The translations under genes were made by a program, and so were the position numbers. A stretch of DNA of 64,000 nucleotides from Macrostomum lignano (taxonomy: Eukaryota): assembly GCA_002269645.1 (NCBI GenBank), contig NIVC01003731.1:15882-79881 (forward strand), read 5' to 3'. This document shows, piece by piece, positions 5,111-59,541 of the stretch (within the stretch, counting starts at the first letter, position 1; each line of letters starts with the position of its first letter). The notes beneath the pieces are model-generated. The model was given only the letters and a program-made list of their open reading frames with translations. It did no database searches and was not told where the DNA came from.

Positions 5111-6430
5111 TTCATTATTCATATCATCAATGAAGTATGTCGCTTAAAAATACTTTTTAGTTTTTTTCTGTTCCATATTTCATAGATTAAATGTCTTGTG
5201 AATATGAATGAATGAATTTTCATGCCCAGAAATAGAACTTAGCCGAAGCATTCATATTCATATTCACCTTTTAGTGCGAGGCCTGTCAACTTTGCTTTAG
5301 TCAGTAGAGCTCCCATAATTCGTGTTCAAACTAGCTGGTTCAATCTTCATTGTATGCTGACGAAGTTAAAAAAATACCTCGTATCCTATTTTCGTACCTA
5401 CCCTACCTATTATTCTTCTTTACCTCTCTGTCAACACTGGTTAACTAGATAGCAATTCTCACACTAATAGCTTAATGGCGCAGCACTGGGATCGCTTAGG
5501 GATAGCGCTCGCCCCTCTGGATGATCTACTAGTACTTTGACAAGAACCGAAATTGAGTAGTGATTATTAGATGAGGCTCTCTGTTCGAAAATCGTCTACT
5601 GCTTTCGTTTCTGCAGGCCATAAATTTCATTTTCTGCTCTCTCTCTCCCAGAGTCACACAGCAGCAGCAGCACTAACGAGTGCCCTGCCGTTGCTGCTGC
5701 TAGGCGGTCTGAGCATGACTATACGTGCAGAAACATTTGCCAGTAACAACCCCGGGGGAGCTGGGAATCCAGGCTTAAGTGTTCCAGATGAGTTCCTTAT
5801 GCCTACTATACTGTCGTGGAGAACTTCGGCCAAGCGTCAATCTTCGATAAAGAGCTGCTCATTAGAGTTTCTACTAGGGTCAGTAGGCGAGAAAACTGAT
5901 TAAAATGATTAGCAGTGCTTAAGATTTGACGGTTCAAGTTGGATTTAGCGGACTGTCGGATTGGCAGGGAGCAAGGCTGAGTCCACTGACACACTTATTG
6001 AGCTGGAACGGCGCTGATTGGTCGGCCCAGTTTTTCTGGCTGACTGAAGGCTTCTGAGGCTTCATCGGTTTATATGGCTGTTTCTGACAGTCCAATTTTA
6101 CTTCCAATACTATTTCTAAACACAAAGATACACTTTCAAGCGATATTGTCGCGGAGATTTTGCATCGAACTTTCGAATCCTTTTTTCTCTGTGTTTCCGT
6201 ATTTGTGTCATTGAGTGCGCGCAGTTTCCCGTAACGCCTGTGCCGCCCCCACGTGTGTGTGTGTGTGTGTCCCCGATAGCTGGACCGAATTAGCTAGATT
6301 GAGAACGCAGCCGGTCTCAATCTAGCTGACTAGCTGCCAAAAATGCAGCAACAGCATCAGCGTAATGCTGCAGCAGATTCAGTATAGTATATATAATATA
6401 CACAGTATAATTACTGCCGTCACAACAGGT

Positions 6431-6542
6431 ATGTCTAGCAGACTAGTTGCTATGGTCGGACGGTTCGGCCACTCAGAATTCACTGTCTCAATGCCGCTGC
6501 TGCTTCTGCTATTATTGTTACTGAGCTCCGGCGTCTCGGCTG
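6431..6542 (+). CDS. Lar: Alternative leader exon A of the LAR-family RPTP, encoding a signal peptide (MSSRLVAMVGRFGHSEFTVSMPLLLLLLLLLSSGVSA; start could be 6365, 6431 or 6491)
   Basis: Poly-Leu h-region and VSA cleavage motif end exactly at a G|GTAAGT donor (6543) in phase 1. This matches the phase-1 acceptor of the Ig1 exon at 32490. Confidence 0.7.
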
Positions 6543-7635
6543 GTAAGTTTTTTAAAAATATTTTTATTCCAGTCTCAGGCTTTGTCACGGTCATAGCAAT
6601 CCGCGCCATCAGAGCACCGGTAAAGAGCTAAATACTCTTTCGACCAAAACGCTGAATAATAAAAGTTTTTTTTAAATTCTGCATTATAAAGCTGTGGAAT
6701 TGTTGCGCTGTAAATGTTTGGGACGAGTTGCAGAAAGTCAAGCAAATAACCTAGGGAAGGTTTTAGTGCTTTTTTGCTATGTACACCTCAGCAGCGGAGA
6801 ATCTCCCTTTCTCCTATACTGCTTTTTCCCCCAGCTTCTTTGTCTTCTCCCCATCTCTTGGCGTGCAGGCTTGTAGCTTTATTTATCTCTACCAGTGCTC
6901 ACAGCAGAGCCGCTGGTCTATTCAGGATCTGCTCAAAGCGCCTAAGCTTTGACTTTACGGAGATGTCACAGGTTGGTGCTGCTGCTGCTTCTGGTGCTGA
7001 AGCAGAGCAAAACTGAGGTGGGCAGGGCAGGGGACAGCTTTGCGTTTGGCAGCCCCTCCGGCGGCCACTGACCATTTATTATTCATTTACTCAGCAACTA
7101 TGATGTGGGATTGGAGCCTTCTCTCCCCTCCCAACTCCCTAGCTTCTCCCCTCCCCGTGTCTCGCCCTCCTGCCCAGCCAACTCCCAGAGTTCACCTTTC
7201 CAGCCTTGGCCGCATAGGAAGGCCTGTCGCCCGAGAACAAGTTGTATCTGACCGGCCCAGCCAGAGACAGAGAGTAAAACGATCGCAAACGATACGAGAG
7301 AAGCCCACTGGTTTGCCTGCTTAGGCCGGGAGGGGCGGCTCCATCCCCTTTGACCGGCTGGGTGACCCGCTCAAATGAACAATGCAGTGAGCTCAGACAC
7401 GACCAAGTTCTAGTAGTTGAGGCTGGAGCGAACAAGAAGCTATTCCAGTTCAAAGAAATCACTGGAGTGCGTGTTAACAGGCTTTTGGTGGCATTGAGCC
7501 CTGGTATTTGTGCACTTTTGCGGGGCGAAGTTGAAATTTGGGCTCCTTATTATGCTATGTAAGACTTGATGTGTTTACAGGAGTTTTCCAATCAGACCCT
7601 ATCCTTATCCTATCCTCATAGGATCCATATCCTCA

Positions 7636-8205
7636 AATCTGCCTCTCCGCTCCCTCAGTCCTTGAGAATCAGCCTCTCCGCTCCATCAGTCCTTGAGAAT
7701 CTGCCTCTCCGCTCCCTCATTCCTTCAGAATCTGCCTCTCCGCTCCCTCAGTCCTTGAGAATCTGCCTCTCCGCTCCATCAGTCCTTGAGAATCTGCCTC
7801 TCCGCTCCCTCATTCCTTCAGAATCTGCCTCTCCGCTCCCTCATTCCTTCAGAATCTGCCTCTCCGCTCCCTCACTCCTTGAGAATCGGCCTTTCCGCTC
7901 CATCAGTCCTTGAGAATCTGCCTCTCCACTCTATCAGTCCTTGAGAATCGGCCTTTCCGCTCCATCAGTCCTTGAGAATCTGCCTCTCCACTCCCTCAGT
8001 CCTTGAGAATCTGCCTCTCCGCTCCCTCAGTCCTTGAGAATCTGCCTCTCCACTCCCTCATTCCTTCAGAATCTGCCTCTCCACTCCATCAGTCCTTGAG
8101 AATCTGCCTCCCCGCTCCATCAGTCCTTGAGAATCTGCCTCTCCACTCTATCAGTCCTTGAGAATCTGCCTCTCCGCTCCATCAGTCCTTGAGAATCTGT
8201 CTCTC
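7636..8205. repeat. 31-bp minisatellite TCCTTGAGAATCTGCCTCTCCGCTCCCTCAG, about 18 copies
   Basis: Direct periodicity of 31. Confidence 0.96.
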
Positions 8206-8943
8206 AGATTCTTTGAATCCTGTAGCAATCCTCTTCAGATGAAGAGCCTGCGATCTTGTCCCAATCCTTTTAAGAGATCAATCTACATTCCCACTCAGTT
8301 TGGTCTCACAGTCTAACTTAAATGCCTGTCATTCTTCTCATCGCCCAGAGCTCTCCGCACATCCACCTGGAAGGCTTAGGCGCCATGGCCTTCACAGCAG
8401 AACCCGTGAATGGAGGCCAATTTCTAGTTGGTTCTGAGCAAAGAAACTAACGCCAATGAAACGTGTGTATGCGTGTGTTTTTTCACCTTCCTCTCGCCAT
8501 CGGTTATTTTTTTTTTCGCGCTCCAACCCGCTTACGGCTGGCCAAGTGTCGCCGCGTGAGCTGTTCTTAGAGAAACTGTTTGAAACACTGCAAGGCGAGA
8601 GATGACGAGACAGAGAGAGAGGCGAGAGTTCCTTTCAGCCTGTCTGTAGATCGATGCCACATCCCAGCCATTCTCTGTGCTGCAGTATTGTTGCAGGCTT
8701 TGCAGGCGTTCATGTTTGTTGCCTCATCTCTTTTTCCGATGCGCTCATTCTCCATGTTGCCTAATGTCTTCATGTCATCGGCCACCTCTTCAAAATTGAT
8801 GTCGTTAACGCTGCATCAGCTTCAGTAGAAGATTCTATTCGATTCAAATGATCGCAGAAAGGAAAGGGTATTCTTGAACTTCAGCTTATTATATAGTATA
8901 ACATAGCTTTCACCTGGATAGGATAATCTTATTAGCTTAAAGA

Positions 8944-9054
8944 AGAGATTGTACAATGCCTGACGATTAGAAAGTCAAGGGCTGCTGTACACCCTTGTGT
9001 GAGCGAGTGTATGACTTGCCTCATGTCAATATCGCCGTAGGCGTTGCGCCAGGG
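8944..9054. mobile_element. Dispersed repeat, internally deleted copy of the element at 26387-26577
   Basis: TGACGATTAGAAAGTCAAGGGCTGCTGTACACCCTTGTGTGAGCG and TCGCCGTAGGCGTTGCGCCAGGGT match both ends of the 26.4-kb copy. Confidence 0.75.
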
Positions 9055-9255
9055 TACCTAAAACTCACCTGGTAATTAAACTCAATTAAAGACTTTTATT
9101 GTAATTAATGTATTACCTAGCAAAGTTCAGTTAGTTTCAAAAACAATGCCTGTGGGACTCCCCTGTTAGTTCTCCTGTTAGGTAATGGTGTCTCATTATG
9201 ATTGTTTAATGACAATAATAATTCAGCCATTGTTATCTGGGCGCGGGTTAATTGT

Positions 9256-9418
9256 ATGGCGCCTGCTGGCTTGTGTCTCGCATCTTGGCAACATTTTTTT
9301 TATTATTCTGGCCAGCTCAAAATCTCCTCGTCCCGTTTCTCTGTGTCTGTCTTCTTTCCCCTCCTGTTTTTTTCTACCTTTCCCGCCGTACCGAAGAAGT
9401 TTAATACGCAGGTCCCAG
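9256..9418 (+). CDS. Weak candidate alternative leader exon B (MAPAGLCLASWQHFFYYSGQLKISSSRFSVSVFFPLLFFSTFPAVPKKFNTQVP)
   Basis: Open from the ATG to a strong CAG|GTAAGC donor in phase 1. The hydrophobic stretch is late and atypical and may just be a pyrimidine tract. Confidence 0.3.
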
Positions 9419-10502
9419 GTAAGCTAGCCGCTGGCGCCGGCGCTAAATACAGGTTGGACAGGAGGCCAATACTGGCTGGATTTGAGTAGCTGGCAGTTAG
9501 AGCCGGGAGAGAGTGAGCGCAAGTGTACCTGGCCATGCGGCACTGCGGAAACCATTCTAAATTATGCATTCCCATTCTTGGCGCGCCAGCTGAGGAGGTT
9601 GGGTTGGCGGCCAACTCCGCACTAAATATTGCGCCTTGTCTTCGGGATCTGATGGTTCGTTGAAGTGGGAAAATTCTCCCATTTCCATCCGTCCCCAGCC
9701 TGTGACGCGGCCATCCGGCAGCCCTCGGTTAGACGAGATCCAAAAAAATTTCCATTGACAACAACCGCCCCTGTAAAATCACTTTGATCAGGCAAGCTCC
9801 CCCCCCTGACCCCTTAAATACACCTGGCACTAGCTACTGCTGTTGAATATGTTTACACTGTTACTCAGCCAACCAGCCAGTTTATAAACCTAGTCGCTGT
9901 ATTTCTCCATAAGAGATAAGAGCCTTGAGATCATCGCTTCCAGTTCGATTAGTCGCTATTTTATTCCACTCGACTGTGGGCTCCACTGTCTGTGTCCGGC
10001 CTGAAGCTTATTTGCAAGCTGGCTTCTCCTTCCGAGCCCTACCCGCCAGCAAGCGGTATCAAATTCCCATTGCGGATGCGCTGAAGATGCCTCATCAAGG
10101 CTTAGGGATAGACTGCAGCGAGAGGGAGAGGTTAGAGAAAGAAAAATAACTGTGCGCATTATTGTTAGCCAGAGTGCCGGTCCTGGGGGCTCGCTTTCCT
10201 CGGCTGGCTCGTATATCTCTGTCTGTTGGGGTTTTACTTTTTCATATTGGCTGTGGGCCTGCGCTGACCAAGCATTGGCTTCTCAATTGAGCTGCTTGAG
10301 GCGAAAAAATTGATAGAACTAACTGCATAGAGAGACTGTCGGTGTTATGCAACAGCGCAAATTTAGTCGTACGTCAACATTTTTAATGGAATATAAATTG
10401 GATAGCTACATGTAGCGGGCAGCTGAGACATCGAGGAAACTTACCATTTTACAGCAGGTCCTTATGGACACAGCTTAGCCATGATGCATGCTCTATGAAC
10501 CA

Positions 10503-11385
10503 CTGCCAGCCTTCCTGATCCCCAGTTGCTGTGCTGCCAGCCTCCCAGGGTGTCAGTTGGTGGACAAGCCTCCCAGAGTGTCAGTTGCTGGGCCAGCCTC
10601 CCAGGGTGTCAGTTGGTGGACAAGCCTCCCAGAGTGTCAGGTGCTGGGCCAGCCTCCCAGAGTGTCAGTTGCTGTGCCGCCAGCCTCCCAGATCCTCAGT
10701 TGCTGGGCCAGCCTCCCATGCAGAGTGTCAGTTGCTGGGCCAGCCTCCCAGATCCTCAGTTATTGGGCCGCCAGCCTTCCAGATTCTCAGTTGCTGGGCC
10801 ATCCTCCCAGATCCTCAGTTGCTGTGCCTCCAGCCTCCCAGATCCTCAGTTGCTGGGCCATCCTCCCAGATCCTCAGTTGCTGTGCCTCCAGCCTCCCAG
10901 ATCCTCAGTTGCTGGGCCAGCCTCCCAGATCCTCAGTTGCTGTACCTCCAGCCTCCCAGATCCTCAGTTGCTGGGCCAGCCTCCCAGAGTGTCAGTTGCT
11001 GTGCTGCCAGCCTTTCAGATCCTCAGTTGCTGTACCTCCAGCCTTCCAGATCCTCAGTTGCTGGGCCAGCCTCCCAGAGTGTCAGTTGCTGTGCTGCCAG
11101 CCTTTCAGATCCTCAGTTGCTGTACCTCCAGCCTTCCAGATCCTCAGTTGCTGTGCCTCCAGCCTCCCAGAGTGTCAGTTGCTGGGCCAGCCTCCCAGAT
11201 CCTCAGTTATTGGGCCGCCAGCCTTCCAGATTCTCAGTTGCTGGGCCATCCTCCCAGATCCTCAGTTGCTGTGCTGCCAGCCTCCCAGATCCTCAGTTGC
11301 TGGGCCAGCCTCCCAGAGTGTCAGTTGCTGTGCTGCCAGCCTTCCAGATCCTCAGTTGTGCTACCGACCTCCCAGACCCTCAGAT
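10503..11385. repeat. 28-bp minisatellite family GCCAGCCTCCCAGATCCTCAGTTGCTGG, array 1 (28- and 31-bp variants)
   Basis: Direct periodicity. The same family occurs at 12480 and 35868. Confidence 0.96.
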
Positions 11386-12479
11386 TAGATATTTTAGTTT
11401 TAAAAACCAATGCCACTTAAAAGCCTTTAACCGTACGAGGATAAACCTTAGTCTAAGTATAAAGCGAAGTTAGTTTGAAGAAAAGGAATTTCGGTTTCTC
11501 AATTTCGTGACTAGAGAGCTGTGACACTCCTTTGGCCTTTCGTCTGCCAGATCGCGAAGGCCGCGGTCATAAAATTGGGTAGAAAAAGCAAGAGAAAAGG
11601 AGAGGAGCAGAGGTTGGGAGAATTTCCACCCCACACGCAAGACCATGACCGGATTGTTGGCCACAATTCCATCTTCTTGGTCCTTAACCGCAGGATAAAA
11701 CTCTATTTTTTAAATTGAATACTTTCGACGACCTTTCGGTTGTTTTCTTGAGCAGAGTAGTGCACCGGTACTGGTTAGCTTGAGCCGGCATCTCCCGCCT
11801 GCTAACTTGTCCTTTATGCGGGAGTTCTGTTGTGTCCCAGCTGGCAAGTGGCTGGATTCTATGTATACATTTTCATGGCAGCCTTGTGGAACAGGGCTTC
11901 TGGGGCCCCCCTTACCCGTACGCTGAGGCTGCAAAGGCCCCATCGATTCTCCATTGCTGTCGCTTCCCAACTCTTCTCTCTGCCGGACTCTCGATCTGCC
12001 TGACTTGGCGCATTTCTCCCCTTTGGGGATCGAACTTTCGCTGGAGGTATGAATATGTAAAAAAGTGGCCCGTATCTCTCTATCTCTCCTCTGCTGTCCC
12101 TCCTTCTGCTTGCCTCAGCTGCACAGCCAGCTTCTGTCTTATTTTCTGCCCATCACTGTCCGAGTTCCTGAGGCGATGGGCCCTGCCTGCCGCCGCCGCA
12201 GATATGATGCGAGTAATTTCAATTTACTGTCTTGCGATCTAGTCCAAGTCTGGTCCGTCTGTCAGATTGCCGCGTCCGCGCGCTGTTCAAGAAGAATATT
12301 CATATACTTGTTCTTTACTGAGAATCGGAAATCTGATTTTTGTATGCATGTGTGTGAACTTACTTCACTGGCTGCTGGGCCTATGGGAAATATTTGAGAT
12401 TGTTTGCGGTAAATTTGCTGCATCTGCCACTAGGTTCGGCTTGTGCACTTTCATGATTGTTTACTCCAAGCTTCTCTGA

Positions 12480-12868
12480 ACCGCCAGCCTCCCAGATCCT
12501 CAGTTGCTGTGCCAGCCTCCCAGATCCTCAGTTGCTGGGCCGCCAGCCTCCCAGATCCTCAGTTGCTGGGCCAGCCTCCCAAATCCTCAGGTGCTGGGCC
12601 AGCCTCCCAGATCCTCAGTTGCTGGGCCGCCAGCCTCCCAGATCCTCAGTTGCTGGGCCAGCCTCCCAGATCCTCAGGTGCTGGGCCAGCCTCCCAGATC
12701 CTCAGTTGCTGGGCCAGCCTCCCAGATCCTCAGGTGCTGGGCCAGCCTCCCAGATCCTCAGTTGCTGGGCCAGCCTCCCAGATCCTCAGTTGCTGGGCCA
12801 GCTTCCCAGAGTGTCAGTTGCTGGGCCAGCCTCCTAGATCCTCAGGTGCTGGGCTAGCCTCCCAGATC
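12480..12868. repeat. 28-bp minisatellite family, array 2
   Basis: Same unit and orientation as 10503-11385. Confidence 0.96.
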
Positions 12869-14703
12869 GTGGCAGATCGATATTTAATGCTGTTAGCTAT
12901 ATGCCCCACCCATCATGTGCTGACAGGTGCTAAGCAGCAAACGATGGAGAGGGGATGCTGCAGGTGTTGCCAGGCCCCGCACTCAGCTCAGCCCGCCCAG
13001 CTGGGACAATTTTTTCATCCAAGGCAATAGCGGATAGCGAGGCTGTAGGTGAAGGCAGGCGAGCTCAGTAGGCTTAGGAGAATCTGCCAAGGTGAAAAAG
13101 GTAAACTGTGAGTGCCAGTGCGCGTGTATGCAGAGTAGGAAACTGCGCTTATGGTGGGCCCTCCCGCTTTTTTCCAGGGCAAAAAAGTGTCTCATTTCCT
13201 ATCGCTAAGGCGATATCAGGCAGGCGCCCGCAACTTTCAATTGCCTGTCCTTTGCTTCACTTTCCTCTCAGCAGTTTGGTTAAATCGTGCAATAGTGCGG
13301 GCTGAGCTCAAGCGTCTTCATTGTGTCGCACGCCGTTCTCTATTGCACCCGAACCCTGTTGCCCAAATTATTAATGCTATAGCCAATGCTCAGGTATGCA
13401 GCTCTCTTACATTTAACGTGTTGGGATCGCTATTGTGCGCCATCCAGTGTCCAGCATCCGGTCAGGAGCTTCAGTGGTAATATATGGTAGAACTAGTTGA
13501 TGATGAAGTTGGCTCTTTCTCAGCGCCACCCTGGCGCATACCTACTAGGTGTGTACACACACACGTATATAGAGAGAAAGTTAATAACGTTTCACCTTCA
13601 CCTTCATAGGTGCGCCGCAATAAATCACTCTTTAATCTCTTTCCCTGTGTGTCCACCAGATGGTCAGAATTCCTCACTGTGTGCCTGTCTTCGGGTTGCG
13701 CGCTCATATTATTCTTTATAAAACAATACTTAAATTTTGGTACAAGGCTATTCCTGCTGTAGAAATATTGTCATTATTATTATTATTATGGAAATATAGT
13801 CGTATTTTGCTAATATTAATGAATATACGAGCGTATTGTATTACGCAATACTTTTCCTGGGGTCTGACTAAAATCCCAGCTGCTCCGGCTATTGTTGCGA
13901 GCCCACCACCCCACCACCAGGTGTAGCACCGCCGCCTGAGTGAAACAGCGGTGCGATAGTATGTAAAAAGTGAATAGCAACGATTCACTAGATTTTATGG
14001 GGTCTGCGAGTATAGCCATATGTTGAGTTCGATATCTCTAGGGTCACTTTTCAACTTTATCTGTAACGTCTACTCTACTTCTACTATATCTACCTCTCTC
14101 TGTCTCACCCTGCATCTACTCACAGTCTCACTGTGTCTACCTCTCTGTCTCACCCTGCATCTACTCACAGTCTCACTGCCTCAATACTGTAACTTGATAT
14201 TCATCATTCAGCCAGTCTACTTTAAAATATATTTATTCCACTCTTTTCATTGTTCGCTAATACAAGACAATGGCTGCTTCATAAAAAATAGTTAAATATC
14301 CAGCTTTGGTAGTGAACAAGAGACACGTGTCTAAAAGGAGCTCGTAGGACTTGAGCATAGGCTGAGTCACTCGCAAGAGACTCATTAATAAGACGAGTTC
14401 TCAGCAGTTGAGAATTATAAGTAGTCAGTTTATCTTTAATTTTTACTGTTGTTTATCCTCCTACTTGACGATCGTCTATAGTTGAGACTTTAATACGATA
14501 AGGTGCCACTTAGAGGCCACTTTACTGTCGGGACGGCGGCTTTGTATTTGCCCTGCCTATTGTGCACTGAGTCTTTGTGCCGCTCTTGGTTGCCACTTGA
14601 AGTTCTGGATAATATAGAAAATGAAGGCAATTCAACCAATCATCGGTTTTTATGCATACAGTATACGAGCTACTAATGTCTTTTTCGCCTACTCACCGTT
14701 TTT

Positions 14704-15356
14704 CACTGTGTGAATGCTTGACTGTGTGAATACTTTTCTGTGTGAATGCTTTACTGTGTGAATGCTTTACTGTGTGAATGCTTTATTAGGTAAATGCTTT
14801 TCTGTGTGAATGCTTTACCGTGTGAATGCTTTACTCTGTGAATGCTTGACTGTGTGAATGCTTGACTGTGTGAATGCTTGACTGTGTGAATGCTTGACTG
14901 TGTGAATGCTTGACTGTGTGAATGCTTTATTAGGTAAATGCTTTTCTGTGTGAATGCTTTACCGTGTGAATGCTTTACTAGGTGAAAGCTTTACTAGGTA
15001 AATGCTTGACTGTGTGAATGATTTACCGTGTGAATGCTTGACTGTGTGAATTATTGGCTGTGTGAATTATTGGCTGTGTGAATTATTGGCTGTGTGAATT
15101 ATTGGCTGTGTGAATTATTAGCTGTGTGATTATTGGCTGTGTGAATTATTGGCTGTGTTAATTATTGGCTGTGTGAATAATTGGCTGTGTGAATTATTGG
15201 CTGTGTGAATTATTGGCTGTGTGAATAATTGGCTGTGTTAATTATTGGCTGTGTGAATAATTGGCTGTGTGAATTATTGGCTGTGTGAATTATTGGCTGT
15301 GTGAATAATTGGCTGTGGGAATTATTGGCTGTGTGAATTATTGGCTGTGTGAATGC
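14704..15356. repeat. Compound 16-bp minisatellite: CTGTGTGAATGCTTGA switching to CTGTGTGAATTATTGG
   Basis: The switch occurs at about 15045. Confidence 0.95.
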
Positions 15357-15662
15357 TTCACTAAATATAGGTACATACTTGATAGTATATTCAGAGTACT
15401 GCGTGAATGCAGTGAATGCGAAGGTTTTACTCATAATCTCTTTCACCGGATTTTATGATCCAAAGCATTCGCTATACTTATTTATAGCGTCTTAGTCAAC
15501 TGCGTGCTCGCTTAACTGATGGCCCCGCGTCAGTTATGCAAATGCTATAGCTATAATGCATGTTTACTACTGACTTTACTACTGACTTGACTATGTAGCC
15601 AGTTTTCACTACTTTCTTCTATTATCTCTTTTCGACTTTGCTTCAATTAACTGTCGCCTGTC

Positions 15663-16150
15663 TGTTGTGTCTGTCTTAGTGTCTGTCTTAGTGTCTATCT
15701 TAGTATCTATCTTAGTGTCTATCTTAGTGTCTGTCTTAGTGTCTGTCTTAGTGTCTATCTTAGTGTCTGTTTTAGTGTCTGTCTTAGTGTCTGTCTTAGT
15801 GTCTGTCTTAGTGTCTGTTTTAGTGTCTGTCTTAGTGTCTGTCTTAGTGTCTGCCTTAGTGTCTGTCTTAGTGTCTGTCTTAGTGTCTGTCTTAGTGTCT
15901 GTCTTGTGTCTGTCTTGTGTCTGTCTCTGCGTGTCAATTAGTGTCTGTCTTAGTGTGTCTCAGTGTCTGTCCTAGTGTATCTTATTAGTGTCTGTCTTAG
16001 TGTGTCCTAGTGTCTGTCTTAGTGTGTCTTAGTGTCTGTATCAGTGTGTCTTAGTGTCTGTCTTAGTGTGTCCTAGTGTCTTTATTAGTCTGCCTTAGTG
16101 TCTGTCTTAGTGTCTGTTTTAGTGTCTGCCTTAGTGTCTGTCTCTCTGTC
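15663..16150. repeat. 12-bp minisatellite TAGTGTCTGTCT
   Basis: Direct periodicity. An inverted relative lies at 33645-34215. Confidence 0.96.
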
Positions 16151-16684
16151 TGTCTCCACACGCTGCAACCCACAACTAACTGCATACGATGTCTTGTGCA
16201 CTTTACTTCCATTCAGCAAGTTGAAAGTCTGAAGTTTAAATGAGCAGTCCGTTTAGTTTTTTGTTTTCATTCTATGAATGGAGGAGTTCCTTATGAGAGA
16301 CTTAAGATGGCGCTTGCACTTTTGCACCTGGCAACGGGTCCGTTCTCCTTTCTTTTTTGTTTCCTGCTATTTGTGGGCTCTGAATAATTTAAAAGGCCGT
16401 CTCAGCTCGATGGCAGCCGGACTGTGGGCGATTCCAGCCTCCTTAAGCCACTTGTAGGACTGGGCGGAGACGGATGTTGCTGAATAGAAAAAAATTGTTA
16501 TTACAATTACGATGAAGAGTTTTTTACTCATTGCACTTCTGTACCTCAGATATATTGATATATTGTGGAACATTAACACTTGAACTGGCTAAGGCGCTGT
16601 ATTTGGTACTTTCTTGCCTTAAGCATACTTTGTGCACCGGCTGCTTACGGAGCCTCATCGTATTTCTTATCTCGCTCTGTGTCT

Positions 16685-16880
16685 CACTGTTAGTATCTCA
16701 CTCTCAGTATCTCACACTCGGTATCTCACTCTCAGTATCTCACACTCAGTATCTCACTCTCAGTATCTCACTCTCAGTATCTCACTCTCAGTATCTCACT
16801 CTCAGTATCTCACTCTCAGTATCTCACTCTCAGTATCTCACTCTCAGTATCTCACTCTCAGTATTTCACACTCAGTATCT
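16685..16880. repeat. 14-bp minisatellite CACTCTCAGTATCT
   Basis: Direct periodicity. Confidence 0.95.
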
Positions 16881-17052
16881 CAAAATTTATCCATTTATAT
16901 CTCATTCTCACATTCTCACATCTCACATTCTATCTATTTTTATCTCACCCTCAGTATCTTGTCCTTCTCACCTTTGTTTTAGCATATATTTATTTCAGTA
17001 GTTTTTTCCCTCTTTTTTCCTAGGAATTGCATAAAATTCAAAATATTCTACT

Positions 17053-17116
17053 ATGAGTAAACCACAGAGGTACGCAAGTGTATTTTTACGGGTAATTCTT
17101 CAAGTCATTCTAGCTG
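17053..17116 (+). CDS. Lar: Candidate alternative leader exon C (MSKPQRYASVFLRVILQVILA), exon probably starting at 17024
   Basis: Strong acceptor TTTTTTCCCTCTTTTTTCCTAG|17024 and ATG at 17053. A basic n-region plus hydrophobic stretch ends in Ala at a CTG|GTAAGT donor (17117) in phase 1. One Arg interrupts the h-region. Confidence 0.5.
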
Positions 17117-17792
17117 GTAAGTTCTAATTTGTAGGGCTTGGTCTGAATTTACAGAGCCAGCAACCTGCAGAATGTGAGCGTAAAGTTGGCGTGGAAAGCA
17201 GCACTTTCACTGGCAGCCACTGGGCGAGGCAGTGAAAACACAAACAAAATGATTTAGATAGCTTCGGCTGCACTTGGAGACCTGTCATTCATGGCCGTAC
17301 TTTTTTCACCTATTCAACTAGGTATTCTTTCTGTCACACCTTTTCATAAGCCACCACCTTCTTCCAGAGCACTTCCCAGCCAAGAGAGGCCAGTTGAGTT
17401 TTTCTTCAACAGGCCTGGCGCCATCCGCACTGTGTCACGGTGTTGAATTATTAATAATAGCCAAAGTGTTGACGGTTTTTTTCAGCATGGACTCAATGAG
17501 GAAGTAGTTTTAAGTAGGCCTTCGCTTTCCACAGCATCAGGTGGGGTCCGGTCCTAAAGCTTAAAGTACTGAATTTTTATATTGTTCGACAAAGCATCTG
17601 TAGGTCTGACATAACCGTTAATTTAATATTTTCAAATAATTCCATTTTCGATTCAAATTTTAGTTCTTGACTTCCACTGTTTATGGCATTAATTTGTGCT
17701 TCTAGCTATTGTTAGTAGTATAAATTAGAGGCATTTTATATTTGCTTACTATCTGCGTGTTTGGCACCAATGACTCACACAATGGCTTATGG

Positions 17793-18372
17793 TTGGCGCC
17801 ACACTGGCTTATTAATATTGGCGCCACACTGGCTCATTAATATTGGCGCCACACTGGCTCATTAATATTGGCGCCACTCATTAATATTGGCGCCACACTG
17901 GCTCATTAATATTGGCGCCACTCATTATTATTGGTGCCACACTGGCTCATTGATATTGGCGCCACACTGGCTCATTAATATTGGCACCACTCATTATTAT
18001 TGGCGCCACACTGGCTCATTGATATTGGCGTCACACTAGCTCATTAATATTGGCGCCACTCATTATTATTGGCGCCACACTGGCTCATTAATATTGGCGC
18101 CACACTGGCTCATTAATATTGGCGCCACACTGGCTCATTAATATTGGCGCCACACTGGCTCATTAATATTGGCGCCACACTGGCTCATTAATATTGGCGC
18201 CACACTGGCTCAGTAATATTGGCGCCACTCATTAATATTGGCGCCACACTCTCTCATTAATATTGGCGCCACATTGGCTCATTAATATTGGCGCCACACT
18301 GGCTCAGTAATATTGGCGCCAAACTGGCTCATTAATATTGGCGCCACACTGGCTCATTAAAGTATTAATATT
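17793..18372. repeat. 25-bp minisatellite ATTGGCGCCACACTGGCTCATTAAT with 19-bp deletion variants
   Basis: Direct periodicity. The variant lacks CACTGG. Confidence 0.96.
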
Positions 18373-19761
18373 GACTCACCAGAGACATAGACAGACTGTG
18401 CAACACAAAGTGGCTGCTGGCAGTGTGAGCATGCTTCTCAAAACAGCCGGCTCCTCAATCTCACTTTGCCCTCCCCAGTCTCCGCCGCTCTTCATCCAAC
18501 GATGCCGTCATCATTGCGCACGCAACCCCTATCAAAGGACCGTGAAAAACATTATAAAAACAGTTTTGAAAAACACCGCCTGAAGGCAGTTGAACAGAAA
18601 CTTCCTGCAAATTTTCTAATATGCTTGAGCATCTCAGCATCTTTGAGTGCGGATATTCAGTCTGGCAAAACCGGCTATTGCCCCCCCCTTTTTACGTAAG
18701 CGATTAATCTCGCTTCATGGGTTCGAAAAGAGTTGCTGTTAGGTTTTCGGCACATGGGAGCCTAAAATGGATGCATATATACGCAGCAGCGACTGCAGGG
18801 ATTGAATAGATGTCCCATACTAATCAAAGTAATGCGATTTGGCGTTTGTCTCCCCCCAAGCTCCTGTCAATGGTAGGATGGATGATCCGGAACGGTCTTC
18901 AACCCCTACTAAGGCATGCAATTGTCCACCGTTAGACTGACGGGGTGAACAAGGTGAAAATGGCAGGAATGAGCTGACAGAGGTGTGAGCGGACAGACTT
19001 TACGTACAAGCTGACACCGTTTTTTTCTCTCTTTTACCTTACCTTAACTTGGCCCAGAAGAGGACAGAAGCAGTGCAAAAATGAAACAAGCTGGTGAAAG
19101 TCAGGAAGTGCCACTTAAAGCAGACATTTTGGCTACAAGAAGTCCCAGTAGAGTAGAGTAGAGTTAAAAGCTGCAGCAGCCACTTAAGGTGCAATTCCTA
19201 AGTCCTTCTAGCATTCTCTGCTCAGAGAGAAGACTGGTACACAGAAAGTGAGCGGGGCCGAGCAGCTCAAGTGAGCTGGCGATATCCGATTGAAATTTTC
19301 TGGAAAGCGGATCCTGCAGAAGCGGCATCTTGTAAATTACATAAAGCGGGGGGGGCATTATGAGCAAAGGAAACTCACTACTCCCACACTCCCCTAACAA
19401 TCCAGCAGCTCTAATTAACTACTGAGAATTTTTTCTTCTCTGAGAAAAAAACCGGCACGCAGGTAAAATTGGCGAGAGGCAGACGCCACTTGGCGTATAG
19501 ATGCCGGCGTAGAGATAAGCTTTATGATTAATATATTGCTGGCATCAATTATTAGTAGACCGACGGGCGACTGAGCACATGTATAAATACACAGGTGCAA
19601 GCGAACTTGATAGGCGAAAATAATCATTGATAAAAATAGCCATCATAGATTTGGGCGCCACCTTGTCTACACTGGGGAGTACTAACTCTTCGAAAATTAA
19701 ACTTAAACTTTCCAAATCACGCTTGACAGACATTGTGATGCCCAAAATTAGCTAGACGCAA

Positions 19762-20061
19762 AATTAATAATAATAATAATTGATTACACCTGCCCCTATT
19801 GGGCCAGATGTGCAACCGACAGCTCAGCCGCAGCTATTGCGCAGTGCATCTGAAGACTGCGTACGGCTGTTCAGTCCAAAGACTGGGGGTCACCACACAG
19901 CCTCAATTAACACAGCTAATGCTGGCACCCATTTTACAGCTGAGTGAACTGAAGCAATGCAGAGTTAAGTGTCTGGCTCAAGGACACAAATTATTTCGAT
20001 GGGTCGAGAATCGAACCTTTCAGTCGTGTGTCCGACGCTCTAACCACTAGACTACAACCCC
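19762..20061 (-). mobile_element. tRNA-derived SINE with CORE-like central domain and (TTA)n tail
   Basis: Minus strand head GGGGTTGTAGTCTAGTGGTTAGAGCG...GGTTCGATTCT has A and B boxes. It is followed by GTGTCCTTGAGCCAGACACTTAACTCTGCATTGCTTCAGTTCACTCAGCTGTAAAATGGG, which resembles the MIR/CORE consensus as I recall it, and a (TTA)n tail at about 19766-19780. Confidence 0.8.
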
Positions 20062-22340
20062 GGCGCCAAGCTAGTAGTGTACTGATAAGCTAGTTCAGTA
20101 GCTTATACGCATTTGAACAGATTTTTTTTAAGTAGCAAACTCAAAGCCAAGTGCACACAATCAGCGGTCTTTTTAGTTGCCGATGAGGTATTAGCTTGGG
20201 GCTCCTGGGCACTGTGTGTATCCAAGGCAAACATCTCCGTTTCCATGTAGCTCATTGCGATAAGATCGTTGATTTATAAAAGCATTGTCGGCATTTCTGC
20301 TTTGTGAGGCAAATTTTTTAAAAGCCATGTTTTCACTTTTTTTTCTACTTTCGATATCAAAATTGCCCGCTGATTGTGTTTTCCGTCTTCTCTTGAAATC
20401 GTGTATAAATAAGCTGCTACTGATGAATGAAGCAGGTCTTTGCTAACTGAGTCAATCAAGGTGGTGGGGAGTAGCTTAAAAGGAAGAGGAAAAAAACCAT
20501 TTGGTCACGCAGCATCTGCTCTAATATGGGCCATAGGTGGCGAGAGTTGCCATCGGTTGGGAATTGACTCAATTTTTTTCGGTTGGGGGGTCGCTGGGAG
20601 TCGCCGAGTTTTTCCAGTATATATTGACCAGTGTGTTTATCTTCACCCCGTGTCTGGCGAACGAGTGCCCTGTCTATACCATAGATGCATGCAGTTTGCT
20701 CTCCATTTCTGACTATCTGTGAGCACTGGCCGGTGTCTGCTCTCTGCCTCCTTCCCACTCTTCCCAGGCCTAATGCTGAGCAGAGCTTTGCTGGAACGTA
20801 GTAGAGGAAATTAATTTCCCCACTAAATAAGTTGACCGATACGCGTGGCCAGTGGCCCCCCGCCAGCCTCACCTCAGACCTCATCCCCCCCCTGTTCTCT
20901 GTCTCTGCTGATCCCCCCGGTAGTCCGGGGCCGCCCAGTTACCTAAGCTATAGATACAAAACTGCGATGGATTGTGTACAATTGGCTCATCGCTGTATTG
21001 ATACTGCCAGTAGACTACTGGGAGTAATAGAGCTTAGAGGAGGGGAAGGGAGTGAGGCTGGGAATCATGATGATGAAGGGGGTGGGTGAAGGGGGAATTG
21101 TCGCATTGAAATCCCGCTATACTTGCTGCGGACAAAGCGATAGGCTTAGCCGAGGAGAAATGAGAAGCAGAGCAGTATAGGAGCCATACAGTTAAACTAG
21201 AGACTGCTAAACCCAAGACAAGGCGAGTGATAGTGGGTGTTGGCAGTCCAGGTGAGAAATGATGGGGTAGTTGGAAAGAACAATTTGGTCCATGGCACCA
21301 GCTCCAGGTTGCTGACGGGCCTGGGTTGGTTGGTTGCTGCTTCTTGGCAGCGCTTTTGTCCTTCATATTTCTGCCTACCTGTCCCACCCTCTTTGCTTTT
21401 TCTTTTCGTCTCCCGCACCCTTGTCCGTTTCCCCCTCCCTTATCGCCAGTCGCCTTCCTTCACGCCAGAGAGAGAGAAAGACTTTTTTAGAGGGAGGGGT
21501 TTTCCAATTTTTAACACGCGGCAGCTGCAGCTTCCTCTTTGGCACTTGTGCTTGTGTTTAGCTTCATAGCCAGCCTAGCGCCACCCTTACGAGATGCTGC
21601 TGCCGACATCTCTCTCTCTTATGTGTGCATCATGCCCGTGTATGAATAGGCGCAGGTACCTGCCAACTTCTATTGTGCGGATTAAGGCTGCGTAGAGGAC
21701 TCAAACGGAGATCTGGCTTGGCTAGGGTGGATGGAGAATAAGGATTCTGTGTGCTAGGCCTGGGATAGGCCAGGGGGCAACGGCCAACCATTGGCTCTGC
21801 TAGACTGGGCGAGGCTCCTGCCCTGCATTCTGCTAGGTTTTGTTTGAGTCCCGAGACCTACCTCTCGTTCCCCTGATAGCCAACCCCAGACTCAGTCCGT
21901 AGCCTTACCTCGTCGGTCTCTCGCCGCCAGCAACCCCCAGCCCTCGGGGAGAGATTATTTGACCCACTACCTAACAGGGGTGTGTGTGTGGATTACTTCG
22001 CCGTGTGCGCTAAGCTTTAAATCTGCATCAAGTCAGTCTATACAAAGCAAGCATAAACGGTCAGGAGGTTTTTCGTTGCCAAAATCGAAATTTCGGCAGT
22101 CCTATACTGCACTGTTCGAGCATGGAAACACGAGTTGAATGCTCGGTTACTATGGCAACTTGAATCTGTTCGATATTGAGAACTCGGGTGGATTCGAACT
22201 GCTGTTTACTCGCCGGTTAAGCTTCTCCCATCTCTTTTCTAATCCAAAAAGTCGCCATGCGTTCTCCTGCGAAGTTTGCCGACAGATTCTAGCCCAGGAA
22301 TTGTTTAAGTTATAACAAAAACACTGGAAGCAGCGGGCCG

Positions 22341-22488
22341 ATGTTGCTTCCGCGGCCTTTATTGCAGCTCCTGCTGCCGACGTTGCTGCTGCTGCTGTTG
22401 TTGCAGTTCGGCCGCCAGGCCTCCGCAGGCGCTCTCGACAACATGGACGAGATCATATCATCCACGTCTAAGCTGATTGACAAGCTGC
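22341..22488 (+). CDS. Lar: Leader exon D of the LAR-family RPTP (MLLPRPLLQLLLPTLLLLLLLQFGRQASA-GALDNMDEIISSTSKLIDKL)
   Basis: Classic signal peptide with an ASA cleavage motif. Open to a C|GTAAGA donor (22489) in phase 1; C+AG gives Gln joining Ig1 in frame. It is absent from the ORF track because it is under 60 aa. Confidence 0.8.
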
Positions 22489-28306: not shown

Positions 28307-28408
28307 CGGACAGCCAACAACCGACTTCGGTGCCGGCGGCAAAGCTGCTTGTCCAGCTTAGCCCGGCGATGATGCGGGATGAATACTATTTCATTGATTA
28401 CGATAAGA
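28307..28408 (+). CDS. Lar: Candidate 102-nt phase 1-1 exon between the leader and Ig1 (xDSQQPTSVPAAKLLVQLSPAMMRDEYYFIDYDK)
   Basis: About 45-nt T-rich tract ending TCAAG|, open frame in the required phase, and an AGA|GTGAGT donor at 28409. Confidence 0.5.
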
Positions 28409-30637: not shown

Positions 30638-32400
30638 AATAGATGAGAATCGATCCTGAAGTAGATGAGAATCAATCCTGAAGTAGATGAGAATCGATAC
30701 TGAAGTAGATGAGAATCGATCCTGAAGTAGATGAGAATCGATCCTGAAGTAGATGAGAATCGATCCTGAAGTAGATGAGAATCGATCCTGAAGTAGATGA
30801 GAATCGATCCTGAAGTAGATGAGAATCGATCCTGAAGTAGATGAGAATCGATCCTGAAGTAGATAAGAATCGATCCTGAAGTAGATGAGAGTCGATTCTG
30901 AAGTAGATGAGAATCGATCCTGAAGTAGATGAGAATCGGTTCTGAAGTAGATGAGAATCGATCCTGAAGTAGATAAGAATCAATCCTGAAGTAGATGAGA
31001 ATCGATCCTGAAGTAGATAAGAATCGATCCTGAAGTAGATGAGAATCGATCCTGAAGTAGATGAGAATCGATACTGAAGTAGATGAGAATCGATCCTGAA
31101 GTAGATGAGAATTGATCCTGAAGTCGATGAGAATCGATCCTGAAGTAGATGAGAATCGATCCTGAAGTAGATAAGAATCGATCCTGAAGTAGATGAGAAT
31201 TGATCCTGAAGTAGATGAGAATCGATCCTGAAGTAGATGAGAATTGATCCTGAAGTAGATAAGAATCGATCCTGAAGTAGATGAGAATCGATCCTGAAGT
31301 AGATGAGAATCGATCCTGAAGTAGATAAGAATCGATCCTGAAGTAGATGAGAGTCGATTCTGAAGTAGATGAGAATCGATCCTGAAGTAGATGAGAATCG
31401 GTTCTGAAGTAGATGAGAATCGATCCTGAAGTAGATAAGAATCAATCCTGAAGTAGATGAGAATCGATCCTGAAGTAGATAAGAATCGATCCTGAAGTAG
31501 ATGAGAATCGATCCTGAAGTAGATGAGAATCGATACTGAAGTAGATGAGAATCGATCCTGAAGTAGATGAGAATTGATCCTGAAGTCGATGAGAATCGAT
31601 CCTGAAGTAGATGAGAATCGATCCTGAAGTAGATAAGAATCGATCCTGAAGTAGATGAGAATTGATCCTGAAGTAGATGAGAATCGATCCTGAAGTAGAT
31701 GAGAATTGATCCTGAAGTAGATAAGAATCGATCCTGAAGTAGATGAGAATCGATCCTGAAGTAGATGAGAATCGATACTGAAGTAGATGAGAATCGATCC
31801 TGAAGTAGATGAGAATTGATCCTGAAGTCGATGAGAATCGATCCTGAAGTAGATGAGAATCGATCCTGAAGTAGATGAGAATCGATCCTGAAGTAGATGA
31901 GAATCGATCCTGAAGTAGATAAGAATCGATCCTGAAGTAGATGAGAATCGATCCTGAAGTAGATGAGAACCGATCCTGAAGTAGATGAGAATCGATCCTG
32001 AAGTAGATGAGAACCGATCCTGAAGTAGATGAGAATCGATCCTGAAGTAGATGAGAATCGATCCTGAAGTAGATGAGAATCGATCCTGAAGTAGATGAGA
32101 ATCGATCCTGAAGTAGATGAGAATCGATCCTGAAGTAGATGAGAATCGATCCTGAAGTAGATAAGAATCGATCCTGAAGTAGATGAGAGTCGATTCTGAA
32201 GTAGATGAGAATCGATCCTGAAGTAGATGAGAATCGGTTCTGAAGTAGATGAGAATCGATCCTGAAGTAGATAAGAATCAATCCTGAAGTAGATGAGAAT
32301 CGATCCTGAAGTAGATGAGAATCGATCCTGAAGTAGATGAGAATCAATCCTGAAGTAGATGAGAATATATCCTTAGATAGATGAGATTCGATCCTAAGGT
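30638..32400. repeat. 22-bp minisatellite GAAGTAGATGAGAATCGATCCT, about 79 copies
   Basis: Direct periodicity. Variant pattern repeats at 462 bp (21 units). Confidence 0.98.
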
Positions 32401-32489: not shown

Positions 32490-32795
32490 AGGAGGCGCGG
32501 ATCACCCAGGGTCCGGAGACAATCACCGTGCTGGACAACACCGCGGCCCTCTTCATCTGCCGCGCCGAGGGCAGCCCCGCACCTGAGATCGAATGGCTGG
32601 TGAACAATCGCCGCGTCACGCCCAGGCTGCCTAGGTACTTCTCATTCGCCATCTCGTTTGGCAAGGTGCTGCGCGCCGAGCTGGTTCGAGCCAGCGAAGA
32701 CAACAACACCCTCATCGCCTGCGTAGCCAAGAACGCCGTCTCGTCCAGGTCTGTCACCCAGACAGCCAGGCTCTACGTGTATCCCAAAGCGTCAG
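32490..32795 (+). CDS. Lar: LAR-family RPTP exon: Ig domain 1 (EARITQGPETITVLDNTAALFICRAEGSPAPEIEW...LIACVAKN...ARLYVYPKAS)
   Basis: TGACTAAC branch point at 32471-32478, TGCAG| acceptor, CAG|GTAAG donor. 306 nt, phase 1-1, with I-set C-x(11)-W...C pattern. Confidence 0.95.
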
Positions 32796-34394: not shown

Positions 34395-34571
34395 TGATCC
34401 CAGCCGGCTTCCCGCGCATCGTCAAGCCGCCGGGAATGCAGGTGGTTGAGAAAGACCAGCGCGTCACGCTGACGTGCCAGGTGAATGGCGAGCCTCGGCC
34501 GCGAGTTCTGTGGATCAAGGACTACATTCCGGTGGACTTGTCGCTGCCCAGGTTGTCCATGAGCCCAAATG
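34395..34571 (+). CDS. Lar: LAR-family RPTP exon: N-terminal part of Ig2 (VIPAGFPRIVKPPGMQVVEKDQRVTLTCQVNGEPRPRVLWIKDYIPVDLSLPRLSMSPN)
   Basis: GCAG| acceptor and G|GTGAG donor; 177 nt, phase 1-1. P-x-GFP...VVEK...C...G-x-P-x-P...W-x-KD-x-x-PVD is the LAR-family Ig2 signature. Confidence 0.96.
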
Positions 34572-35867
34572 GTGAGCTGAGATGACGAAATTATATACTC
34601 TTTTTTTGTTCAATGCATTTGTACACTACAGTAGCATTTATTTTATGTTGACTAGCATTTGCTGCCCCCCCCGAAGGAATCACGTGAATAACAAGGGTAT
34701 TATTGTACCATCACCAAATCGGATTGTCAATTAGTCAATCAATCAACCACTCTGTGGTCTTAATCCGTCCGTGCACTGACCCTGTCTGGCAATCTGCTAT
34801 CTAATCCATTCTTTATTTTTAGCGCTTTTTATAATTCAATACTCATTCCACCTCGGCTTCCCTCACTCCCTCTCTCTCTCTCTCTCTGTCTGGCTCATCC
34901 GCAGAAACCGCCTTTTCCTCGCCACCGCTCCCCCCCGTCCCATTCTCTAATGCTTGGCAGAGTCTCCATTCCTAAATTGAATTTCTGTTTCGGCTAGAAT
35001 TGCCCGCCGGCGAAATGCTCTGCTGTGTGTGTTTGTGTGTGTTTGGTCTCACTTGCGTGCTGTGCCGTTGATGAGGCGAAGAAGCCAAGCGAAGAAGAAG
35101 CAGTAACGCATACACAAAACAAAAACGCGCACAACGCGGAGATACGGACAGAAACACAGGAGCGACAGGCCGGATTAAGTAAAAGAAGAAAAAAGCTGCA
35201 AGTTTCTCAAAAAACTTTCCCTGCTCAAATTCGGAAGTCATACAGTTTCAGCATCCACCAGAGCTTTTTCTAGTGAGCTCCACCCGGACTGAATCAGAAT
35301 TGACTTATCCGCCTGGCATTCCGTCTGCCTCCAACTTGCTCGCTTTTCCTTTTCCCCGACCAGGCAAATTGGCATCAGCCACACACCGAGAGTCCCGGCT
35401 TGAGCTCTTGAGTTGAGGAGAGAAGGGCGGAGAAGGGCGGCGGGCAAGAGAGAAATTGACCGGAAGAAATCAATGTCTGGGGCAAAGATGGCCCGGTGAC
35501 CTCTGCCCCGGCCTCTGCAGGCACCGCCAGCTTGCTGACTGTCTGTGCTAGCAGCGTCTGCCAGCCTTAATTAGACTGGGTCTGCCTCTATAAGCAGTGG
35601 CTTCCCCAGGCGCCTTTGCTCTGCGTTTCTCTTCGTTTAGTGAGATGCCCCACCTCTCTTTTAATCTGCCAATCTCTCTTTAAGGTTCGTCTTCTGGATT
35701 TCACTCTCTAATTTCACTTCTCATACTTTCTCACTCGTCATCTTCATATTGCATTTCTGTATATCAGCTCTTGTCGAATTTTGAGGCAGCGAAATTTTAA
35801 TCATTAGCTATATTGTGAAAGTTAGGAAACCTTCTAACTTCTCTACTCTCTAAATTGTAGGAAGGGG

Positions 35868-39347: not shown

Positions 39348-39362
39348 ATGCCAATTTCACTG
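39348..39362 (+). CDS. Lar: Candidate 15-nt micro-exon at the meA-equivalent position of Ig2 (adds DANFT)
   Basis: TACTAAG branch-like motif about 25 nt upstream and TTGTTATTTTCCTATCAG| acceptor. ATGCCAATTTCACTG is open in phase 1. The CTG|GTAGCA donor is weak. Confidence 0.4.
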
Positions 39363-39589
39363 GTAGCAGCAGATCCATCATAGGCTGTAGAGTGGCCGAC
39401 TAAAAAGCACCAAAACAAACTTAGCGGTAGTACCGGAGAAGAAGCATTCGAGAGCGAAATAGTGGCTTTCGAAGAAAAAGACGCAATAACGAAATTATGA
39501 CGGGCGAGTAGCCATTGCCAAGTCCGAGATTAGAACATTTATTTACGAGTTTTATTTACAAGTGGCAGAAGGCCTGCTTTTTTGACCGG

Positions 39590-59524: not shown

Positions 59525-59541
59525 CACTCTCCTACCGGCAG

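Follow-up and report, generated by a model that had tools for sequence, protein, structure and literature searches.

The + strand of a 64,000-nt window of the Macrostomum lignano genome (assembly GCA_002269645.1, contig NIVC01003731.1, positions 15,882 to 79,881) carries, judged by homology, the 5' part of a gene for a type IIa (LAR-family) receptor protein tyrosine phosphatase (RPTP). An earlier note on this DNA had proposed that four tandem leader exons, here called A to D, each contribute a start codon and a hydrophobic stretch and are alternatively spliced to the exon of the first immunoglobulin domain (Ig1). Our analysis identifies one of the four, leader D, as a genuine signal-peptide exon, and an exon further downstream, E, as a conserved coding exon that encodes a different peptide in front of Ig1. 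In the reading that we favour, and hold tentatively as somewhat short of probable, D is the core start of the gene, E is optional, A is a second, distal first exon, and B and C are not translated. Positions are those of the window, and all features lie on its + strand.

Results

Leader D (22341-22488, 148 nt) is an ATG-initiated open reading frame (ORF) that encodes MLLPRPLLQLLLPTLLLLLLLQFGRQASAGALDNMDEIISSTSKLIDKL and ends in phase 1 at the donor TGC|GTAAGA. The maximum of its Kyte-Doolittle 9-residue mean (KD9) is 2.88. The Ig1 exon (32490-32795, phase 1-1; tblastn, phmmer) provides the common acceptor. It is preceded by cattgcag, opens as AG|GAG GCG... and must take a single base from the exon before it, giving a junction codon for Gln after D, Glu after A, B or C, and Lys after exon E. 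A search of a collection of 5.8 billion sequences with the joined Ig1-FN1 sequence found the M. lignano protein A0A1I8ISY9 (P0007) as the nearest protein, with 52% identity and nothing closer. P0007 (...LSLRLPACCYADSMDAMITSTKKLKETIK|EARITEGPE) and the joined D and Ig1 translation (...FGRQASAGALDNMDEIISSTSKLIDKLQ|EARITQGPE) are collinear and gap-free through the junction, and share 50% identity over 139 residues, from the hydrophobic core across the junction into Ig1 (BLASTP). When the 17 pre-Ig1 residues of P0007 were scanned against 127,900 six-frame window positions, the D tail (22437-22487) came out on top (score 41, z = 7.0; runner-up 26), and the end of the match coincided with the D donor.

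Codon statistics point the same way. The G+C content at third codon positions (GC3) of D is 0.82 and its codon log-likelihood ratio (LLR) is +0.08, which exceeds the 99th percentile of the background (92 ATG-ORFs; GC3 0.50 +/- 0.10, codon LLR -0.53 +/- 0.21). Confirmed LAR exons range from 0.58 to 0.82 in GC3 and from +0.12 to +0.43 in codon LLR (leave-one-out). The GC3 likelihood ratio of D (coding 0.75 versus background 0.50) is 2e4. Taken together, alignment and composition indicate that D is a genuine signal-peptide exon, predicted to join Ig1 directly, in phase 1. The signal peptide would be cut at ...QASA|G, leaving about 20 conserved residues at the N-terminus (GALDNMDEIISSTSKLIDKL). 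The mature extension of this length that the earlier note had expected from D has a conserved counterpart in P0007; the cleavage site itself we infer.

Splicing of the upstream leaders in frame into D was considered and rejected, since four AG sites lie between the D start codon and the stop before it and all are in the wrong phase. The leaders, if used, would therefore be mutually exclusive. Two donor-like sites of 7.0-7.4 bits without an ATG-ORF, which with those of A, B and C are the strongest before Ig1, flank D at 21252 (CAG|GTGAGA) and 23337 (GAG|GTGAGG); the former could terminate a non-coding first exon feeding D. We also note that residues 1-130 of P0007, upstream of its D-like signal peptide, include a second hydrophobic segment (MGWLRLLAAAPALCVLLPQTVLIVCG).

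The earlier note had named position 28307 merely as an acceptor. The acceptor exists, and it opens exon E (28307-28408, 102 nt, phase 1-1), which encodes (x)DSQQPTSVPAAKLLVQLSPAMMRDEYYFIDYDK(K) and is delimited by ...ttccttcactcaag| on its upstream side and by the donor GA|GTGAGT (28408/28409). Another M. lignano protein, A0A1I8JQW9 (P0012), contains an Ig1 identical to that of P0007, preceded by ...LKVLKSSVSTDPSESYYFVDFDRK|EARITEGPE, so that one Ig1 occurs with two different N-terminal peptides. Among about 128,000 window positions, exon E scores highest against the pre-Ig1 peptide of P0012, and the match ends precisely at GA|GTGAGT. The joined E and Ig1 translation aligns with P0012 across the junction (DEYYFIDYDKKEARIT versus ESYYFVDFDRKEARIT; BLASTP), with junction peptides DEYYFIDYDKK|EARIT and ESYYFVDFDRK|EARIT, respectively. 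Both GC3 (0.64) and codon LLR (+0.13) of E support coding, the latter lying above the 99th percentile of background. We conclude that E is a conserved coding exon, predicted to be joined to Ig1, with a counterpart in the second M. lignano protein. The general proposal that the gene has an alternative N-terminal structure is thus upheld, most strongly by E, as D-like and E-like peptides precede the same Ig1 in P0007 and P0012. Both proteins are 50-55% identical to the window gene, pre-Ig1 peptides included.

The open frame upstream of the E acceptor contains no ATG, so an upstream phase-1 donor must feed E. The simplest reading makes E a cassette between D and Ig1, although its cassette behaviour is inferred. 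The terminal ATG of the M. lignano spliced leader (SL; CGGTCTCTTACTGCGAAGACTCAATTTATTGCATG) was considered as a start codon on E or Ig1 and dismissed, as it is out of frame and runs into stops.

The assignment of the constant body to a LAR-type RPTP, as the earlier note had it, is borne out by the agreement of domain order, structure matches and exon mapping. With 162 Ig-rich proteins as tblastn queries, Ig- and FN3-coding segments were confined to the + strand at 32.4, 34.3, 45.4, 55.2-56.0 and 58.5-59.7 kb. Residues 4-326 of the joined exons align to Ig1-Ig3-FN1 of PTPdelta (E = 5e-62, phmmer against the PDB), and the best solved-structure matches are the ectodomains of PTPdelta, PTPsigma and LAR. 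The three N-terminal I-set domains stand in the order Ig1-Ig2-Ig3, as type IIa RPTPs require. FN3 repeats follow, with FN1 in 55320-55925 and another segment at about 59.5 kb; the window breaks off inside this region and holds the first repeats only, and the transmembrane and phosphatase domains lie beyond it. In the glycosaminoglycan-binding Ig1 loop that reads KKGKK in PTPdelta and PTPsigma, NNRRV stands opposite KKGKKV and is followed by more Arg (PRLPR), so that the loop is partly basic and lacks the canonical motif. One of two readings of the 52% identity to P0007 is that the window gene may be a divergent paralogue. With P0007 as query, the homologue search yielded just three M. lignano proteins, and in a search of representative proteins its best 150 matches were mostly giant multi-Ig proteins, uninformative on N-termini. 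We regard gene identity, exon limits and phases as firm, along with the conservation of D and E and their junctions to Ig1. The coordinates given here can serve to annotate the true start of this LAR gene.

Leader A (6431-6542, 112 nt) encodes MSSRLVAMVGRFGHSEFTVSMPLLLLLLLLLSSGVSA and ends in phase 1 at CTG|GTAAGT. Its KD9 of 3.8 is unique, as none of about 31,000 background positions reached 3.5. The nine Leu codons of its core (CTG CTG CTT CTG CTA TTA TTG TTA CTG) differ synonymously only. A Val at -3 and an Ala at -1 (VSA) stand exactly at the exon end, and the mature protein predicted for A joined to Ig1 begins with EEARITQ..., where vertebrate LAR-family proteins begin (PDB alignment). 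The leader lies in unique sequence outside repeats (blastn within the window). Neither the homologous-protein search nor tblastn found a homologue of A. A TATA-like motif, TATATAATA (6388-6396), lies about 43 nt before its ATG; TATAWAW occurs 13 times on the + strand of 32.5 kb, roughly once per 2.5 kb, which makes this placement weak promoter evidence. On these features, A is probably a real signal-peptide first exon. That it feeds the LAR gene is a possibility that we rate less highly, and below an even chance. Beyond the A donor (6543-6629) there is an AT-rich, in-frame, intron-like stretch of 30 or 36 nt (GTAAGT...TTCCAG/TCTCAG). The unspliced A frame is open to a stop at 6629 and could encode a stand-alone secreted peptide of 54-66 residues.

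Leaders B and C look weaker. Leader B (9256-9418, 163 nt), a T-rich ORF encoding MAPAGLCLASWQHFFYYSGQLKISSSRFSVSVFFPLLFFSTFPAVPKKFNTQVP, ends in phase 1 at CAG|GTAAGC, which is stronger than any other donor-like site before Ig1. Its hydrophobic stretch (KD9 2.44) is at residues 28-45 and not N-terminal. Phase 0 is likewise open and hydrophobic, because the DNA is T-rich. With a GC3 of 0.54, a codon LLR of -0.49 and a GC3 likelihood ratio of 0.004, B is an improbable coding leader. Leader C (17053-17116, 64 nt) is a 21-codon ORF encoding MSKPQRYASVFLRVILQVILA, with a perfect phase-1 donor (CTG|GTAAGT), a KD9 of 2.31 and an Arg inside the hydrophobic core. A polypyrimidine tract with TAG, ending at 17023 and thus 29 nt before the C start codon, ranks 2 among 4641 AGs in a vertebrate-style acceptor matrix; it carries little weight, because confirmed acceptors of the LAR gene obtain poor scores with that matrix. 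The GC3 of C is 0.29, its codon LLR of -0.76 is below the background mean, and its GC3 likelihood ratio is 0.0004. We consider C unlikely as a coding leader, marginally less so than B; it may be an untranslated exon. Homologous-protein and tblastn searches found no homologue of B or C. Both are doubtful, and most likely they are not translated leaders but chance ORFs at donor-like sites or untranslated exons.

All four ORFs are as the earlier note had described them, with an ATG start, a length of 3n+1, GTAAG directly after, a hydrophobic stretch, and the phase required by Ig1. In order to judge how often such a pattern would arise, a hit was defined as an ATG-ORF of 15-80 codons with KD9 of at least 2.2, in a given phase, on the + strand upstream of Ig1. 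A random position there is a hit with p = 0.018-0.022. Positions 1-32489 contain seven GTAAG sites on the + strand, and the leaders account for four of them (P = 8e-6). A phase-1 ATG-ORF abuts 5/7 GTAAG sites upstream of Ig1, versus 10% expected, and 1/16 downstream. For A to C alone, P is about 1e-4 with GTAAG. With a generic donor position weight matrix (PWM), whose frequencies follow the metazoan consensus, five upstream sites score at least 6 bits and A, B and C are three of them; P for A to C is 5e-5 at this threshold and 0.003 at 4 bits or more.

The significance is lower with donors suited to the organism. The M. lignano donor motif has been reported as GT[G/A]AG (PMC8629364), and GTGAG makes up half of the confirmed donors of this LAR gene. 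The GT[AG]AG set contains 31 sites, none of its 24 GTGAG sites qualifies, and P for A to C is 0.016-0.03. At weak-donor thresholds the phase-1 excess is gone, with 4 hits in phase 0, 4 in phase 1 and 3 in phase 2. The four-leader pattern is thus probably real and not pure chance, and its strength depends on the donor definition. Codon usage sets A and B at the background mean and C below it; the GC3 likelihood ratio of A is 0.23. The earlier grading of the leaders (two textbook signal peptides, one plausible, one weak) is fair at the protein level, but by codons C is the least exon-like.

The fifth phase-1 ATG mini-ORF, at 2841-2904 (MRKPDIAKGNWRSKSRYSKEF|GTAAGC), is not hydrophobic; a TATAWAW motif starts at 2836.

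The four leaders with their flanks share no sequence similarity (MAFFT; 45% mean column identity, no conserved block). This rules out a recent tandem duplication of leaders, and it speaks against a variable-exon cluster of the protocadherin or UGT1A type. An origin as parts of dispersed repeats is also ruled out, as blastn found no copies of the leader regions elsewhere in the window. Between 6.3 and 22.3 kb, non-repeat + strand ORFs of at least 35 residues matched no Pfam family, and the tblastn search found no Ig or FN3 match between A and D. Small genes specific to M. lignano are possible in this interval.

The earlier note had also suggested a promoter or trans-splice site for each leader. 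The trans-splice acceptor motif of M. lignano is [T/C]TNCAG (PMC8629364). The acceptor-like sites before the leaders and E do not fit it (CAACAG for A, TCCTAG for C, GCCCAG and AAGCAG for D, CTCAAG for E), no match was found upstream of the leaders, and a TATA-like motif at a suitable distance, itself weak evidence, is present at A alone. The string AGGAATTG occurs at 17022-17029 and 22296-22303, 30-45 nt before the start codons of C and D, and its AG could be an acceptor. It was rejected as a shared element, as its two + strand occurrences in the 64-kb window were noticed post hoc and three on both strands equal the chance expectation.

Discussion

According to the reading that we favour, D would supply the ATG, a cleavable signal peptide and the conserved peptide of about 20 residues, and would be spliced in phase 1 to Ig1 at 32490. 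Exon E would optionally be included directly before Ig1, adding the acidic, Tyr-rich peptide DEYYFIDYDK, with D to E to Ig1 as the simplest route. Leader A would probably act as another, more distal first exon under a promoter of its own. Cleavage of its signal peptide at the exon boundary would leave a mature protein that lacks the peptide encoded by D and starts at the canonical N-terminus of LAR, EEARITQ. Of the earlier proposal of variable first exons spliced to a LAR body, the part concerning D holds by virtue of the junction alignment; for A, B and C no sign of a junction to this gene was found, and they lack homologues and have codon usage at or below background.

Several observations weigh against our reading. 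Leader A is no better than background in GC3 (0.59) or codon LLR (-0.48). The coincidence of strong donor, phase 1 and ATG covers B and C too (P ~1e-4 to 0.03), yet our reading treats it partly as chance. Since the ten residues before the E-like exon in P0012 (KKSTYSAAAA) differ from the D-like tail, E may receive its upstream donor from a source other than D. Residues 1-130 of P0007 form an unexplained stop-free stretch before the D-like signal peptide. This stretch of 130 codons could be an in-frame upstream leader exon, untranslated sequence or the result of a gene-model fusion, and tblastn found no counterpart of it in the window. The UniProt entries of P0007 and P0012 lack a start Met and are assumed to be partial automated models of unknown provenance, and P0012 carries apparent frameshift or intron read-through segments.

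The strongest competitor, which we rate as a substantial but lesser possibility, is that D alone is used, with or without E, and that A, B and C are chance ATG-ORFs abutting GTAAG in T-rich, repeat-laden intergenic or outron DNA. It agrees with the codon usage of the three leaders (A and B at the background mean, C lower), their want of homology support, the P of just 0.016-0.03 with organism-appropriate GT[AG]AG donors, the even spread over phases at weak-donor thresholds (4, 4, 3), and the hydrophobicity of B in two frames owing to T-richness. It has difficulty accounting for phase-1 hydrophobic ATG-ORFs at 3/5 of the strongest upstream donor-like sites (P ~5e-5), for the phase-1 ATG-ORFs at 5/7 upstream GTAAG sites (10% expected; 1/16 downstream), and for the poly-Leu core of A, which is unique and whose nine Leu codons vary synonymously only. 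Some or all of A to C could instead be real 5' exons of other transcripts, namely small secreted-protein genes, non-coding RNAs or SL-resolved members of polycistrons. Because secreted proteins in general have signal-peptide exons that end in phase 1, a phase match to Ig1 is not specific. The A frame, open through the intron-like stretch to the stop at 6629 with a possible product of 66 residues, and the acceptor-like site 29 nt before the C start codon would fit such transcripts, as would the 30-39% of M. lignano genes that are trans-spliced and the approximately 15% in operons (PMC5730564, PMC8629364). Nevertheless, we consider this explanation unlikely, since the interval between 6.3 and 22.3 kb yielded no Pfam family in non-repeat + strand ORFs of at least 35 residues, no Ig or FN3 exons were found between A and D, the acceptor-like sites before the leaders do not read [T/C]TNCAG, and the DNA between the leaders is largely minisatellite.

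The full proposal, in which all four leaders are coding first exons used alternatively, under separate promoters or trans-splice sites and with differing mature N-termini, is in our view very improbable. All four ORFs do combine ATG, hydrophobic stretch, GTAAG and phase 1, the GTAAG-restricted P for 4/7 sites is 8e-6, and more than one N-terminal form can be demonstrated in M. lignano proteins. However, the GC3 values of C (0.29) and B (0.54) are very improbable for coding exons of the LAR gene (P = 1e-5 and 6e-4, respectively, at GC3 0.75), B lacks an N-terminal signal peptide, the leaders are dissimilar among themselves, and no promoter or trans-splice signature accompanies them besides the TATA-like motif at A. 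An array of alternative 5' exons comprising at least A and D, possibly C, with the optional E varying what precedes Ig1, also appears improbable, if less so. Leaving these aside, we return to D as core start, E as an optional exon and A as a second first exon as the favoured account.

Type IIa RPTPs (LAR/PTPRF, PTPRD, PTPRS and Drosophila Lar) have, like the window gene, Ig1-Ig2-Ig3 followed by FN3 repeats. Diversity of the vertebrate LAR-RPTPs lies mostly in the micro-exons meA-meD and in non-coding 5' exons. The window gene, in contrast, varies N-terminal to Ig1, with the D extension of about 20 residues and the optional, acidic and Tyr-rich E exon of 34 residues. To our knowledge, peptides in front of Ig1 such as those from D and E have not been described.

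The closest precedent is found in the mouse IgLON genes Lsamp, Ntm and Opcml, in which twin promoters drive first exons 1a and 1b that encode alternative signal peptides. Both signal peptides are cleaved to leave an identical mature N-terminus and the choice is regulatory; BDNF is similar (PMC5288359). Leader A versus D, and also C if it is real, would work likewise, A and C both yielding EEARITQ.... Unlike the IgLON leaders, D would leave a conserved peptide on the mature protein. An ATG followed by a signal peptide, as in the IgLON leaders, is found in conserved form in D, at the sequence level in A and marginally in C, and is missing from the N-terminal part of B. Usage in the IgLONs was demonstrated by transcripts and promoter-specific assays, whereas in the window gene D alone is supported. 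Alternative signal-peptide first exons are thus already known from other neural Ig-superfamily genes, and we would see here a known principle in a new gene family and phylum, with no new mechanism. Protocadherin and UGT1A clusters share with the window the tandem 5' exons before constant exons and a promoter proposed for each. Their variable exons are paralogous and encode a functional variable domain, while the window leaders are dissimilar and encode at most a leader or short peptide. SL trans-splicing, which affects a third of Macrostomum genes, makes alternative 5' ends conceivable, but the acceptor-like sites in the window are unlike [T/C]TNCAG (PMC8629364).

If the 5' exons are used as an array, the glycosaminoglycan- and ligand-binding Ig1 would be presented bare (A or C), with a 20-residue peptide (D), or with an acidic Tyr-rich peptide (E). 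Phosphatases of the LAR family organise presynaptic sites and act as proteoglycan receptors, and their choice of partner is set by short, alternatively spliced inserts in the Ig domains. In macrostomid flatworms, and this is the solid result, the variable part stands before Ig1; an array of this kind would correspond, at the N-terminus, to the meA/meB splice code of vertebrates. The E peptide DEYYFIDYDK, possibly sulfated, could imitate sulfated glycosaminoglycan and shield Ig1 on its basic face. The D and E peptides are conserved about as well as the Ig domain, which argues that both are functional. If A is used, promoter choice would remove the D and E peptides altogether.

Other features of the locus

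The remaining constant exons were located by tblastn and phmmer and are all of phase 1-1: the first half of Ig2 (Ig2a, 34395-34570), the second half (Ig2b, 45390-45500), and an exon with Ig3 and the first FN3 repeat (55320-55925). A further FN3-coding segment of the same gene was found by tblastn at 59536-59748, with approximate limits. Of two introns of 10-11 kb, the first (34571-45389) interrupts Ig2 (SPNG|DLII) and the second (45501-55319) the linker between Ig2 and Ig3 (YVR|VRTI). These are presumably the positions of the vertebrate LAR-RPTP micro-exons meA and meB.

Rfam searches of the whole window gave no family at the gathering threshold. The DNA has 46% G+C and is rich in minisatellite arrays, a repeat load that fits published values for the M. 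lignano genome (15% tandem repeats; mean introns of 1.1-1.4 kb; PMC5730564). Most of the intron between E and Ig1 is taken up by a 22-bp tandem array of TAGATGAGAATCGATCCTGAAG (30640-32395, 80 copies, 94% matches), which ends about 95 nt before the Ig1 acceptor. Three separate, equally oriented arrays, at 10505-11383, 12483-12868 and about 35838-36833, belong to one minisatellite family with units of 28-31 bp (GCCAGCCTCCCAGATCCTCAGTTGCTGG). Two of these arrays lie upstream of D and one in the Ig2a-Ig2b intron, and they contain long spurious ORFs in all frames.

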